The notes beneath the pieces are model-generated. The model made no database searches and was not told where the DNA came from. It worked only from the letters and a program-made list of their open reading frames with translations. A stretch of 64,000 nt of DNA from contig NW_027362773.1 of assembly GCF_046119375.1 (NCBI RefSeq), positions 113,088,001-113,152,000 of the forward strand, read 5' to 3'. The position numbers were made by a program, and so were the translations under genes. Source of the stretch: Phyllobates terribilis. Its lineage: Eukaryota. Below are positions 8,505 to 20,532 of the stretch, piece after piece. The first letter of the stretch is position 1. Each line of letters opens with the position of its first letter.

Positions 8505-8588
8505 TCACATATCTTCACATGTTTTTGCGATAATAGTTAATATGAATTTCGGAGGCTTTTGCCTCATAAAGTAATGACACTTTTCCAC
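8505..8588 (-). CDS. CST6: Cystatin E/M-like protein, coding exon 3
   Basis: Acceptor TTTTTGTCTTTTATGCTCCACAG. Translates to VEKCHYFMRQKPPKFILTIIAKTCEDM*, giving the second cystatin disulfide pair, with PP where PW is expected. Confidence 0.8.
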   Translation of the reverse strand: MEKCHYFMRQKPPKFILTIIAKTCEDM

Positions 8589-8880
8589 CTGTGGAGCATA
8601 AAAGACAAAAATGTAGAATTCATTTACATATTATACATAACTATAGTTGCTAAATTCTGGGCACCAAATTATGGTTTGTGCCACCAAAAAAAACACCTAC
8701 GACTCAGAGCGTGGAAGATCCCCTCCATAACCTCCTGCCCCTTAGTGGTACAAACTCCCAGGTTCTGGTGCTTTAGACCAAGCAGGGTGAGGTATGTAGC
8801 AAAGGCAGAGAAGACCTTCCCAAATAGTTGACTGTTCTCATACTTTTTCAGGAGTTTCCCAAACTTTTATATAAAATTTA

Positions 8881-10395
8881 CAAGTGCTTTTCACTAAATT
8901 AGAATATCATCAAAAAGTTAATTTATTTCAGGTTTTCAATACAAACAGAGTGATCTATTCCAAGTGTTTATTTCTGTTAATGTTGATGATTATGGCTTAC
9001 AGCCAATGAAAACACAAAAGTCATTATCTCCGTAAATTAGAATACTTTATAACAACAGCTTGAAAAATGTTTTTAAAATCCAAAATGTACGTTCAGTAAA
9101 TGCCCTCAATACTTGGTCGGGGCTCCTTTTGCATCAATTACTGCCTCAATACAGCGTGGCATGGAGGCGATCAGCCTGTGGCACTGCTGAGGTGTTATGG
9201 AAGCCCAGGTGGCTTTGATAGCAGCCTTCAGCTCGTCTGCATTGTTGAGTTTGGTGTCTCATCTTCCTCTTGATAATACCCCATAGATTCTCTATAATAG
9301 ATTCTCTATGGGGTTAAGGTCAGGCGAGTTTGCTGCCAATCAAGCACAGTGATACTGTTGTGTGTAAACCAGGTATTGGTACTTTTGGCAGTGTGGACAG
9401 GTGCCAAGTCCTGCTGGAGAATGACATTTCCATCTCCAATAAGCTTGTCGGCAGAGGGAAGCATGAAGTGCTCTAAAATGTCCTGGTAGACGGCTGCGCT
9501 GACTTTGGTCTTGATAAAACACAGTGGACCTACACCAGCAGATGACATGGCTCCCCAAACCATCACTGATTGTGGAGACTTCACACTAGACCTCCAGCAG
9601 CTTGGATTGTGGCCTCTCCACTCTTCCTCCAGACTCAGGGACCTTGATTTCCAAATGAAATGCAAAATTTACTTTCATCTGAAAACAACACCTTGGGCCA
9701 CTGAGAACAGTCCAGGTCTTTTTCTCCTTGGCCCAGGTAAGACGCTTCTGGCGTTGTCTATTGGTCATGAGTGGCTTGACACAAGGAATGTGACACTTGT
9801 AGCCCATGTCCTGGATACGTCTATGTGTGGTGGCTCTTGAAGCAATGACTCCAGCAGCTGTTCACTCCTTGTGAATCTCCCCCACATTTTTGAATGGCCT
9901 TTTCTTAACAATCTTTTCAAGGCTGCGGTTATCCCGGTTGCTTGTGCACCTTTTTCTACCACACTTTTTCCTTCCACTCAACTTTCCATTAATATGCTTT
10001 GATACAGCACTCTGAACAGTCGGCTTATTCAGCAATGACCTTTTGTGGCTTACCCTCCTCGTGGAGTGTGTCAATGACAGCCTTCTGGACATCTGTCAAG
10101 TCCGCAGTCTTCCCCATGATTGTGGAGCCCACTGAAACAGACTAAGGGACCCTTTTAAATGCTTAGGAAACCTTTGCAGGTGTTTTTTTGTTAATTATTC
10201 TAATTTACTGAGATAATGACTTTCGTGTTTTCATTGGCTGTAAGCCATAATCATCAACATTAACAGAAATAAACACTTGAAATAGATCACTCTGTTTGTA
10301 ATGACTCTATATAATATACAAGTTTCACTTTTTGTATTGAAGAACTGAAATAAATTAACTTTTTGATGATATTCTTATTTAGTGAGAAGCACTTG
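8881..10395 (-). mobile_element. Tc1/mariner DNA transposon, decayed, in cystatin intron 2
   Basis: TIRs CAAGTGCTT(T/C)TCACTAAAT...; TA TSDs at 8879-8880 and 10396-10397; transposase fragments in ORFs 9862-10092, 9586-9807 and 9306-9665 (SVMVWGAMS, LQQDLAPVH). Confidence 0.9.
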
Positions 10396-10464
10396 TATAT
10401 TTCCAGGTAACTTGGTGTTTCTGAGTACAGCAAAGTATACTGAGAATAAAGACTAACACAGTAC

Positions 10465-10572
10465 CGTCATGTCCTCAAAGCTGGGGGTCTTGCAGGTCTC
10501 TAAATCTTCTTCTTGGAGGCACCCTGTTGGCTCTATAATGACTGTAAATTGGTAATTTATCCCATTGGTGAC
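10465..10572 (-). CDS. CST6: Cystatin E/M-like protein, coding exon 2
   Basis: AG acceptor (10573-10574) and GT donor (10463-10464), phase 0/0. Translates to VTNGINYQFTVIIEPTGCLQEEDLETCKTPSFEDMT, which completes the QxVxG-type motif as Q|VTNG and carries the first disulfide pair. Confidence 0.85.
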
Positions 10573-17351: not shown

Positions 17352-17707
17352 AGAGGACCTGTCACTAGGTCAAAAGTGTCCTATTTGGGCTCTTATTTTA
17401 TTCCTTCTACTTCCCTGAGTAATACATTTTTTGTTTTTTTGGAATCCACCATACGGTTGCAGAGATATAGGCCTTTTTATTTAGTGACAATTTTTAGAGT
17501 CTTTTCTAAGGGGGTGTGGCTTATAGGGTAATTATGCAGAGCAGTCTAAAGACATGCCCCCCCAAGGATCCTGTGAGCACATATAGTACCATATCTCTGG
17601 AACCGTATGGTGGATTTAAAAAAAAAAAAACAACAACTCAGGGAAACACTGGGGAAAAAAATAAGAACCCAATCAAGCAACTTTTGATCTGGTGACAGGT
17701 CACCACT
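17352..17707. mobile_element. TTAA-flanked T2/Kolobok-type MITE
   Basis: TTAA|AGAGGACCTGTCAC ... GTGACAGGTCACCACT|TTAA with internal inverted repeats. Confidence 0.65.
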
Positions 17708-18383
17708 TTAAATCTGAAGGTGTTTAGATTGGGCATAATACCCAGTTTTTCAAGCTCTTAACCTGTAAGTAGAACCAGATTTTATCAGGACTCTCTGACA
17801 GGTCTCTTATGCTCCACCAAGAAAAAAGTAGTATATGTGTAGGGGCATAATTACAGGACCCATCTTCCACATAAGGAAACATTAGTCTGTATTCTATATA
17901 AAAATAAAAATTAAAAACTAAAGAGATGAACTTGACTATAAATTGGTGTGCATGCAATGTGTAGACGCATGTTCACACTGGCCACTAAACAGATAAAAAC
18001 AAAGTGAGCAAGTACCCTTCAGTAAATAAATAAAGAGCAGTTGTGCATGAAAATTACATAGGGTACTTAGTTAACATAATTGAGAAAAAAAAATGTAAAA
18101 GACATCCCACCACATCAAGGTGACCCTATTCTATTCTGAATAGGGTCACCTTGACGTGATGGCATGGCTAAATCTTAGTCTGGACCCCAGAAACTAAAAT
18201 TAACACCATTTTCAGCAATAAAATGTGTAGGTGATACTTGTTAGACGGTTGTAGGTCCCATCAATGGGACCCCCACTAATTGCCAGAACAGGGGTCTTAT
18301 TTCCTGTCTTATCCCCTGGATCTCCACTGGTCCTTGTCAGAAAATAAGTCCTGACTATTTAAAGGTGTATTCTGATCTACATA

Positions 18384-19927
18384 CAGTGCCTACAAGTAGT
18401 ATTCAACCCCCTGCAGATTTAGCTGGTTTGATAAGATGCAAATAAGTTAGAGCCTTCAAACTGCAAACGAGAGTAGGTTTTATGAACAGAAGCATAAATC
18501 TTACAAACCAAAAAGTTATGTTGCTCAGTTGAATTTTATTAAATTTTAAACATAAAAGTGTGGGTCAATTATTATACAACCCCTATGTTTAATATTTTGT
18601 GGAATAACCCTTGTTTGCAATTACAGCTAATAATCGTCTTTTATAAGACCTGATCAGGCCGGCACAGGTCTGTGGAGTTATCTTGGCCCACTCCTCCATG
18701 CAGATCTTCTCCAAGTTATCTAGGTTCTTTGGGTGTCTCATGTGGACTTTATTCTTGAGCTCCTTCCACAAGTTTTCAATTGGGTTAAGGTCAGGAGACT
18801 GACTAGGCCACTCCAACACCTTGACTTTTTCCCTCTTGAACCAGGCCTTGGTTTTCTTGGCTGTGTGCTTTGGGTCGTTGTCTTGTTGGAAGATGAAATT
18901 ACGACCCATCTTAAGATCCTTGATGGAGGAGCGGAGGTTCTTGGCCAAAATCTCCAGGTAGGCCGTGCTATCCATCTTCCCATGGATGCGGACCAGATGG
19001 CCAGGCCCCTTGGCTGAGAAACAGCCCCACAGCATGATGCTGCCACCACCATGCTTGACTGTAGGGATGGTATTCTTGGGGTCGTATGCAGTGCCATCCA
19101 GTCTCCAAACGTCACGTGTGTGGTTGGCACCAAAGATCTCGATCTTGGTCTCATCAGACCATAGAACCTTGAACCAGTCTGTCTCAGAGTCCTCCAAGTG
19201 ATCATGAGCAAACTGTAGACGAGCCTTGACATGACGCTTTGAAAGTAAAGGTACCTTACGGGCTTGTCTGGAACGGAGGCCATTGCGGTGGAGTACGTTA
19301 CTTATGGTATTGACTGAAACCAATGTCCCCACTGCCATGAGATCTTCCCGGAGCCTTGACTCTTCGGACAAGCCTGGCCTCGGCACGGGAGGACACTTTC
19401 AAAGGCTGTCCTGGCCGTGGAAGGCTAACAGTAGTTCCATAAGCCTTCCACTTACGGATGATGCTTCCAACAGTGGAGACAGGTAGGCCCAACTCCTTGG
19501 AAAGGGTTTTGTACCCCTTGCCAGCCTTGTGACCCTCCACGATCTTGTCTCTGATGGCCTTGGAATGCTCCTTTGCCTTTCCCATGTTGACCATGTCTGA
19601 GTGCTGTTCACAAGTTTGGGGAGGGTCTTAAATAGTCAGAAAAGGCTGGCAAAAGAGATCTTTAATCCACACATGTGAAGCTCATTATTCTTGGTGCCTG
19701 AACTACTTCTTAATACTTTAGGGGGACCAAACAGAATTCTTGTGGTTTGAGGGGTTGAATAATAAATGACACTCTGAATTAACTTTAAAAAAAAAAAAAA
19801 AAAAAATGCTGCAGTGCATTTCCCACTTCCAGGCTGATCTACAGTACAAATGTCACAATGCCAAGTTAATTCTGAATGTGTCAACCAGCTAAATCTGCAG
19901 GGGGTTGAATACTACTTGTAGGCACTG
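18384..19927 (-). mobile_element. Tc1 transposon, nearly intact transposase with one frameshift
   Basis: TIRs CAGTGCCTACAAGTAGTATTCAACCCCCTGCAGATTT and TA TSDs. The N-terminus (19298-19594) and DD34E domain (18589-19386: [27 protein letters not shown]) are in different frames. Confidence 0.93.
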
Positions 19928-20304
19928 TATATTATCACTTATCCACTGGCTAGATGAAAAGGGTTAGATTGATGTTGGTTCTACCAATGGGAGCCCACAG
20001 ATAGCCAAGTCCCGATCTGGAAATCTTTGTATCGTCAGTGCCATACTCATTAGGCAGCTGTCGGCCAATTGGACAGCTGACTCCTCTATACATAGGAACG
20101 CTCAGCTGAATGCTCCTCTATGAGAAAGCAGCCTAAAGACACCCCCCCATAGGATCCTGTGAGCACCACCCACTTAAAAAAGACCATAAAAAGTGGCACT
20201 GACCCAATAGTACCATGCTATAATTATTAAAATGTAAGCTAAAAACTATGAAAAGTGAAAAAGCAATCAGAATCCTCATGTACTGTAAGAAATTGTTTCT
20301 TTAC

Positions 20305-20532
20305 CTGCATCGACGCCTCCTTCACTTCAGTGATCTTGCTCCAGTACAGACTGAAACTGTTCATATTGTACGAGTTCTGGAGAAGCTTTACCATGTCGAT
20401 TACTTTTTTGGAGTCCAGGGGCAAAGTGTTCCATCCTCCGAGAACAGGAGCAACCTCTGCTTTAATCAATTCCTCCACAGGGACACAGTAGCCAAAACAG
20501 ACGAAAGAGAAGAGGAGTATGATAGAATTCAT
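20305..20532 (-). CDS. CST6: Cystatin E/M-like protein, coding exon 1 (signal peptide and helix)
   Basis: MNSIILLFSFVCFGYC signal-like sequence, LGGW N-terminal motif, and SYNMNSFSLYW resembling human CST6 SYNMGSNSIYY (recalled from memory). Ends in Q followed by a GTAAAG donor. An acceptor at 20541-20542 suggests an upstream non-coding exon. Orthology inferred from sequence and BANF1 linkage. Confidence 0.85.

Follow-up and report, generated by a model that had tools for sequence, protein, structure and literature searches.

In cystatins C, E/M and F, the binding of legumain is served by a reactive-centre loop of its own, and in other type-2 cystatin genes the first intron divides the QxVxG region. 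The wedge by which these inhibitors bind papain-like proteases is made up of the N-terminal segment, the QxVxG motif and a Pro-Trp pair (PMC8070812). Asn39 is essential for legumain inhibition and dispensable for cathepsins L and V, and Trp106 is important for cathepsin V and not for legumain (PMC8070812); the loop that joins strands 3 and 4 of cystatin E provides an exosite for legumain as well (PMC6109925). Here we describe a gene of this family in a 64,000-nucleotide (nt) stretch of the genome of the golden poison frog Phyllobates terribilis (NW_027362773.1, positions 113,088,001 to 113,152,000), hereafter the window. A first-pass annotation had read this gene, on the minus strand at 8505-20532, as a cryptic CST6-like cystatin with three altered contact sites and had proposed that it was repurposed for another secreted role. 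The analysis reported below indicates that it is the single-copy P. terribilis member of a frog-specific, fast-evolving type-2 cystatin lineage, the product of which would probably still inhibit papain-family (C1) proteases with narrowed specificity and would not inhibit legumain.

Gene structure and predicted fold

Direct reading of the minus strand gave three exons at 20305-20532, 10465-10572 and 8505-8588 with GT/AG borders and phase-0 joints, and translation of each exon on its own gave 76, 36 and 27 residues, free of internal stops. Exon 1 extends from the ATG at 20532 to CAG/GTAAAG at 20305/20304, and its 76 codons cover the putative signal peptide, the LGGW segment, the helix, the post-helix loop with F60, and strand 2, ending at Q76. 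Exon 2, which opens behind the acceptor AG at 10574-10573 (AG/GTC at 10572) and closes at ACG/GTAC at 10465/10464, contributes 36 codons for the VTNG of loop 1, strand 3, the predicted disulfide C94-C103 and the conserved segment CL(K/Q)EEDLETCKTP. Exon 3, behind the acceptor AG at 8590-8589 (AG/GTG at 8588), supplies 27 codons for strand 4, a Trp-less loop 2 (KPPKF), strand 5 and the predicted disulfide C116-C136, and ends with the TGA at 8507-8505. Intron 1 (10573-20304, 9.7 kb, GT...AG, phase 0) splits the loop-1 motif as Q/VTNG, and intron 2 (8589-10464, GT...AG, phase 0) is 1.9 kb long. On the same strand, an AATAAA poly(A) signal was read directly at 8426-8421, 79 nt past the stop codon, in keeping with the signal claimed at first pass, and TATATATT, likewise read directly at 20599-20606, 67-74 nt 5' of the ATG, may serve as a TATA box.

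As the first-pass annotation had remarked, the mechanical list of open reading frames (ORFs) of the window contains only exon 1, running on into the intron (20239-20553). A search with this ORF, scored over the exon 1 residues only, returned a 139-residue NCBI protein named 'cystatin-2-like [Phyllobates terribilis]' (P0001), which was 100% identical to the exon 1 residues and whose sequence equals the three exon translations in order; this database protein, as returned by the search, was used for all full-length analyses. When P0001 was mapped to the window in three GT/AG pieces by an independent script, a single solution was obtained, with coordinates identical to those of the proposed exons, and the NCBI coding-sequence range for P0001 on GCA_046119375.1 comprises 12,028 nt, equal to 8505-20532. 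The proposed coordinates, GT/AG borders, phase-0 joins and uninterrupted 139-residue frame were thus confirmed by direct reading and by the unique placement of P0001. Furthermore, five other dendrobatoid genes were found to have the same three-exon, phase-0 layout, with an exon 2 of 108 nt and an exon 3 of 84 nt in each, an agreement far beyond chance. A tblastn search found no second cystatin copy in the window. We conclude that the cystatin gene is real, consists of three predicted exons whose splicing is read from conservation and annotation, is already annotated, and is single-copy in the P. terribilis window; the description 'cryptic' had to be abandoned, as NCBI lists exactly the same protein.

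The 12-kb extent of the gene, compared with 4.4-5.4 kb in Ranitomeya and Dendrobates, is due to transposable elements in its introns, intron 1 measuring 3.5-4.5 kb in those genera against 9.7 kb in P. terribilis. Within intron 1, a Gypsy-type retroelement (11441-16096), comprising a reverse transcriptase at 13913-14524 (Pfam 5.8e-30) along with integrase-like and gag-like ORFs, has similar blocks of repeats on its two sides (11441-12022 and 15725-16096), and a Tc1/mariner transposase copy is located at 18589-19594. Intron 2 contains a Tc1-like fragment (ORF 9306-9665).

P0001 scored 38.7 bits against the Pfam family Cystatin (PF00031), over a cut-off of 22.2 (E 1.3e-9). In exon-by-exon searches of Pfam and PDB, only exon 2 matched Pfam, and weakly (E 0.0033), exon 1 yielded no Pfam match and just chance PDB matches, and exon 3 yielded nothing. 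An AlphaFold2 model of P0001 built from a 50-sequence alignment showed a mean predicted local distance difference test score (pLDDT) of 87.7, with values above 90 for the mature part, and its secondary structure, namely a strand at 34-36, a helix at 42-58 and strands at 63-77, 81-95, 114-123 and 128-138, is the helix plus five-strand topology of cystatins. Foldseek comparison of this model with PDB gave 42 matches at E <= 0.001, every one of them a cystatin or a fetuin; the top match was human cystatin E/M (4n6l; E 8e-8, 26% identity), with cystatins C and D and CRES close behind. The N-terminus, MNSIILLFSFVCFGYC, is hydrophobic and resembles a secretory signal by direct reading, and residues 1-27 are of low pLDDT. 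The Pfam score, the modelled fold and the Foldseek matches thus indicate that the gene product is, by prediction, a secreted-type type-2 cystatin (MEROPS I25B), as had been claimed, and structure prediction, one of the checks named beforehand, came out in favour of the cystatin topology.

Contact sites, the frog clade and the proposed function

Site equivalences were taken from HMMER alignments to cystatins C and D and from an alignment of the Ascaphus orthologue with the human cystatin-M chain. VLGGW (G32-G33) matches LVGGP in cystatin C and LAGG in cystatin D, so that the N-terminal Gly is retained. Loop 1 reads QVTNG (76-80), opposite QIVAG in cystatin C and QLVAG in cystatin M; the strict QxVxG motif is absent, with Thr in place of the central Val and the Gln and Gly retained, a conservative substitution that has become fixed in the clade. 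The Pro-Trp of loop 2 is also absent, P124-P125 occupying its columns, and F60 stands at the legumain Asn39 position (SYNMGSNS in human cystatin-M, SYNMNSFS in the frog). C94, C103, C116 and C136 align with the disulfide cysteines of cystatins C and D and are invariant or near-invariant in relatives, with the bonds themselves being predicted. Compared with the Ascaphus orthologue, human cystatin M is longer by four residues in the strand 3-4 loop; the frog segment is short and highly conserved. In all these respects the first-pass annotation was accurate: the retained Gly, the QVTNG, Pro-Pro and Phe replacements and the four cysteines at family positions were borne out by the alignments, and the human SYNMGSN that it had given is correct according to the cystatin-M chain.

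To place these states, relatives were collected by word-based and profile searches and by an HMMER scan of 1.84 billion representatives, and orthologues were recovered in frogs only. The top-scoring arthropod multi-cystatins (crayfish, sea spider, mite and leafhopper) were set aside, their scores being summed over many domains. Identity to P0001 was 73-82% in dendrobatids and Anomaloglossus, 63-67% in Dendropsophus, Engystomops and Leptodactylus, approximately 53% in Mixophyes and Eleutherodactylus, 41-44% in Lithobates, 39-40% in Pelobates and approximately 38% in Bombina and Ascaphus. In a tree of 70 single-domain matches, 16 rows formed a frog-only clade with a Shimodaira-Hasegawa-like approximate likelihood ratio test (SH-aLRT) value of 99. 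Four members of this clade bear the NCBI name 'cystatin-M' and the rest are called cystatin-1, -2, -11 or -S-like; given such mixed names, sequence appears uninformative on the subfamily.

Full-length, intact ORFs occur from Ascaphus to Phyllobates. Ascaphus and Bombina have QVVNG and are the only clade members with the loop-2 Trp (KPW and KSW), and Pelobates and all Neobatrachia in the alignment have QVT.. and no such Trp. The Asn39 column reads E, D, D, D, Y, Q, D, N, P, F, L and S across the clade alignment, Asn being found at this legumain P1 column only in Engystomops P0010 and in the fragment P0005; the fish relatives carry Lys (K) at the corresponding position 60. Judged from these alignments, the P. 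terribilis gene shares its three motif changes with a well-supported frog clade, for which they are the norm, and they are not special to it. Phylogeny had been named at first pass as a way of refuting its proposal and did largely place the gene in a clade where these motifs are normal. The clade forms a natural series, with the Trp present in Ascaphus and Bombina and missing in Pelobates and Neobatrachia and with the legumain P1 position free to vary, which makes it convenient for weighing the share of each cystatin determinant in specificity.

Several features of individual members were also recorded. The Ascaphus truei orthologue (P0022), which keeps the loop-2 Trp, lacks both cysteines of the second disulfide, with Trp and Leu/Arg in their places. 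In Bombina bombina, P0079 and P0021 are different cystatins with accessions three apart on the same 643-Mb contig, which suggests a local cystatin cluster. Ranitomeya and Dendrobates possess a tandem duplicate, copy a adjoining BANF1 and copy b adjoining a DHHC gene; in R. variabilis, the two gene starts are approximately 42 kb apart, with a gap of approximately 37 kb. Phyllobates splits off before this duplication in the tree.

Conservation was assessed over 11 frog lineages. Loop 1 was the most conserved segment (mean 0.87), and the segment T92-C103 between strands 3 and 4 reached 0.84. G32, G33 and W34 were near-invariant, and S59, S61, Y63 and W64 were invariant or nearly so. Strand 4, loop 2 and strand 5 were the least conserved, at approximately 0.5 (0.49 for loop 2).

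To estimate the selective regime, Nei-Gojobori counts were summed exon by exon over six dendrobatoid genes (P. terribilis and the five others), and the ratio of nonsynonymous to synonymous substitution rates (dN/dS) was 0.42-1.45 in pairwise comparisons and approximately 0.7 when pooled. By parsimony on the six-taxon dendrobatoid tree, 99 nonsynonymous and 47 synonymous changes were counted, where approximately 80% nonsynonymous would be expected under neutrality; this deficit was significant (binomial p = 0.0006). With a dN/dS of approximately 0.5-0.7, purifying selection in dendrobatoids is weak but significant, and this was the result of another check named beforehand, run here across dendrobatoids. 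The post-helix loop 57-63 had 9 nonsynonymous changes and 0 synonymous ones, an excess that was not significant (Fisher p = 0.058); none of the regional dN/dS contrasts among the six genes reached significance, and no other region stood out. No positive selection is claimed.

Since LGGW and QVTNG are among the most conserved parts across frog families, the protease-binding edge would still be in use and not abandoned. We thus propose that the mature protein of approximately 120 residues would bind C1 proteases through LGGW and the QVTNG first hairpin, that the Trp-less, variable second hairpin would confer weaker or narrower specificity, as in the Pro-Trp-less cystatins of ticks and nematodes, and that, with Phe in place of the P1 Asn, legumain would not be inhibited. 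In support of the second step, cathepsin L is still inhibited by sialostatin L and TsCstN, in which the Pro-Trp is substituted (PMC7153903). We hold this reading to be probable, with some points weighing against it. The change of Val to Thr in QxVxG combined with the loss of the Trp could lower affinity substantially; Al-CPI double mutants at these motifs lost much activity, as far as they are quoted in PMC7153903; QVANW in Dendrobates tinctorius and QVTDR in Pelobates indicate that the loop-1 Gly is not inviolable; and the dN/dS is high for a steadily constrained enzyme inhibitor, with some pairs above 1. A literature search on poison-frog cystatins gave nothing specific.

The first-pass proposal was that the cystatin fold had been repurposed for another, non-inhibitory secreted role, such as ligand binding or service as a component of skin, egg or foam nest; a mucus component would be a further such role. 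Two classical determinants are indeed altered (QVTNG and Pro-Pro), the legumain Asn is gone, evolution is fast (dN/dS ~0.7), and P. terribilis retains at least one canonical cystatin (P0118), which would leave the BANF1-linked copy free to change; a non-inhibitory cystatin-like protein, Rsn-1, provides a precedent (PMC2674504). However, Rsn-1 is unrelated in sequence, Pro-Trp-less cystatins are known that remain selective inhibitors, and the remaining wedge (LGGW and QVTNG) is the most conserved part over more than 10 frog families and fish relatives, which would be hard to explain if it were unused. We therefore regard repurposing as unlikely, though worth keeping in view.

Neighbouring genes and the cystatin E/M question

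The 90-residue coding region of BANF1 (BAF) lies on the plus strand at 3359-4251 (exons 3359-3484 and 4105-4251), tail-to-tail with the cystatin and approximately 4 kb from its 3' end, and furnishes a synteny anchor to human CST6. On the other side, head-to-head with the cystatin, pieces of a palmitoyltransferase gene were found on the plus strand at 34193-35584 and 44205-44495; its DHHC domain (Pfam 1.5e-24) is in the ORF 35231-35584, these being ORF bounds and not exon bounds, and the gene is possibly ZDHHC24, a candidate assignment. BAF stands beside the orthologue in Ranitomeya variabilis, Dendrobates tinctorius and Lithobates pipiens, and the DHHC gene does so in Ascaphus (279-residue product) and R. 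imitator, so that the order DHHC-cystatin-BANF1 was seen piecewise across five other frogs. A human bacterial artificial chromosome at 11q13.1 is listed with BANF1, CST6, CATSPER1, GAL3ST3, SF3B2 and PACS1 (PMC1459182). Since both the frog cystatin and human CST6 stand beside BANF1, CST6 is the positional counterpart of the frog gene, an assignment by position, orthology being unproven by sequence.

Sequence comparisons weighed against going further than this. In PDB searches the similarity of the frog protein was equally weak to cystatin D (E 5.5e-4), cystatin C (E 1.2e-3) and cystatin M (E 2.5e-3), those with the Ascaphus orthologue and with Spea 'cystatin-M' did not separate affinity to CST6 from affinity to CST3, and no non-frog cystatin E/M was present among the looked-up names in the best 150 matches of the anuran profile. 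The designation 'CST6-like' given at first pass was therefore upheld in part, by the position beside BANF1 and by the top fold match to cystatin E/M, but sequence cannot tell CST6 from cystatins C and D.

A second, canonical frog cystatin clade, comprising Spea 'cystatin-M', sequences of Nanorana and Rana, and Ascaphus 'cystatin-like', was characterized by QVVAG and Pro-Trp and matched cystatin C at E 1e-20. Its locus in Spea lies between a protein kinase D gene and RCE1, and in Ascaphus the canonical cystatin is 2.9 Mb from the BANF1-linked one. The P. terribilis canonical cystatin, P0118, has QLVSG, Pro-Trp and the Asn all present.

In a phylogenomic survey of 2009, cystatin E/M was scored as lost in amphibians (PMC2784779). 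It is conceivable, though rather improbable in our estimation, that the BANF1-linked frog clade is this 'missing' cystatin E/M, diverged past recognition. Legumain inhibition and the loop-2 Trp would then have been lost, and the strand 3-4 loop and the scaffolding residues S59, S61, Y63 and W64 of what had been the reactive-centre loop kept, with a fast-changing P1 equivalent and a second site that was retargeted or engaged in an arms race. If this were true, the loss of cystatin E/M in amphibians might really be rapid divergence, a BANF1-adjacent cystatin being present in frogs from Ascaphus to poison frogs.

Retargeting of the second site can also be considered by itself. The former legumain loop and the strand 3-4 loop would be kept as a binding surface, and the fast-changing position 60 would track different or changing targets, for example proteases of pathogens or parasites. 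Such a surface would account for the near-invariance of S59, S61, Y63 and W64 around a position 60 that is F, S, L, P, N, D, Q, Y or E in frogs and K in fish, for the conservation of T92-C103 at the site of the legumain exosite loop of cystatin E (PMC6109925), and for the purely nonsynonymous changes in loop 57-63. Nevertheless, the excess in this loop is non-significant, variability at a single site is equally expected from relaxed constraint after loss of legumain binding, and the frog segment is without the four extra residues of human cystatin M; we hence consider retargeting quite unlikely. Drift towards loss of an intact but dispensable copy is very unlikely, because the pairwise dN/dS of 1.2-1.45 in comparisons with R. 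variabilis copy b, the lack of any significant regional contrast and the transposon-swollen introns are countered by intact ORFs, exon lengths and splice sites in 6/6 dendrobatoid genes, full-length orthologues in frogs from Ascaphus onward, the overall nonsynonymous deficit (p = 0.0006) and the conservation of the disulfide cysteines and loop 1.

In itself the gene is of little consequence: it was annotated automatically, it belongs to an inhibitor family that is very well known, and its motifs are lineage-typical.

Repeats were also recorded elsewhere in the window. A 39-bp minisatellite of approximately 148 copies (94-95% matches, approximately 6.4 kb), located at 26118-26740 and 27346-32494 between the cystatin and the DHHC gene, yields very long spurious minus-strand ORFs. 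Near-duplicate blocks at approximately 49.0-53.5 kb and 60.1-63.5 kb contain the same LINE/retroelement-like ORFs (49254-49580 paired with 60111-60431, and 52900-53505 with 62641-63456), and between them, at 56701-59187, lies a LINE with endonuclease and reverse transcriptase.

Comparison with known cystatins

Rsn-1 of Engystomops pustulosus, described as cystatin-like, secreted and non-inhibitory (PMC2674504), bears on the ranaspumin link drawn in the first-pass annotation. Identity with Rsn-1 was rejected, its sequence in PMC2674504 being unrelated by eye to both P0001 and P0010, and it was absent from the matches of all similarity searches made. Engystomops has its own, separate orthologue of the BANF1-linked gene (P0010, 63% identity to P0001), and the link to ranaspumins was given up.

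The nearest non-frog single-domain relatives are teleost cystatins named 'si:busm1-57f23.1', which share LLGGW, QVTNG and a Trp-less loop 2 with the frog clade, although their grouping with it is weak (SH-aLRT 74). Unlike the frog gene, a Syngnathus gene of this type has neither BANF1 nor a DHHC gene adjacent to it.

Tick sialostatin L and Trichinella TsCstN resemble the frog protein in their secreted type-2 fold and their substituted loop-2 Pro-Trp, and their broad inhibition is reported to have been lost with cathepsin L inhibition kept (PMC7153903). The structures of sialostatins L and L2 were among the Foldseek matches to the frog model; these parasite cystatins belong to unrelated lineages with 12-16% identity to the frog protein, and the likeness is a functional analogy only. 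Cystatin C and chicken cystatin agree with the frog protein in fold, N-terminal Gly, the intron-split position of the loop-1 motif and disulfide pattern, and differ from it in having QxVxG with Val, Pro-Trp and Asn39, being broad, tight inhibitors.

Human cystatin E/M (CST6; PDB 4N6L and 4N6O) resembles the frog protein in being a secreted cystatin of type 2 that has two disulfides and is encoded by three exons (PMC8070812), and CST6, like the frog gene, which is convergent with BANF1, adjoins that gene (PMC1459182). Its sequence similarity to the frog protein is no better than that of cystatins C or D, and it possesses Asn39, QLVAG and Pro-Trp where the frog protein has Phe, QVTNG and Pro-Pro, as well as a strand 3-4 loop approximately four residues longer than that of the frog lineage. 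Nonetheless, it ranks first among the fold matches, no other PDB match exceeds its identity (26%), and the SYNM at the start of the post-helix loop is common to both proteins.

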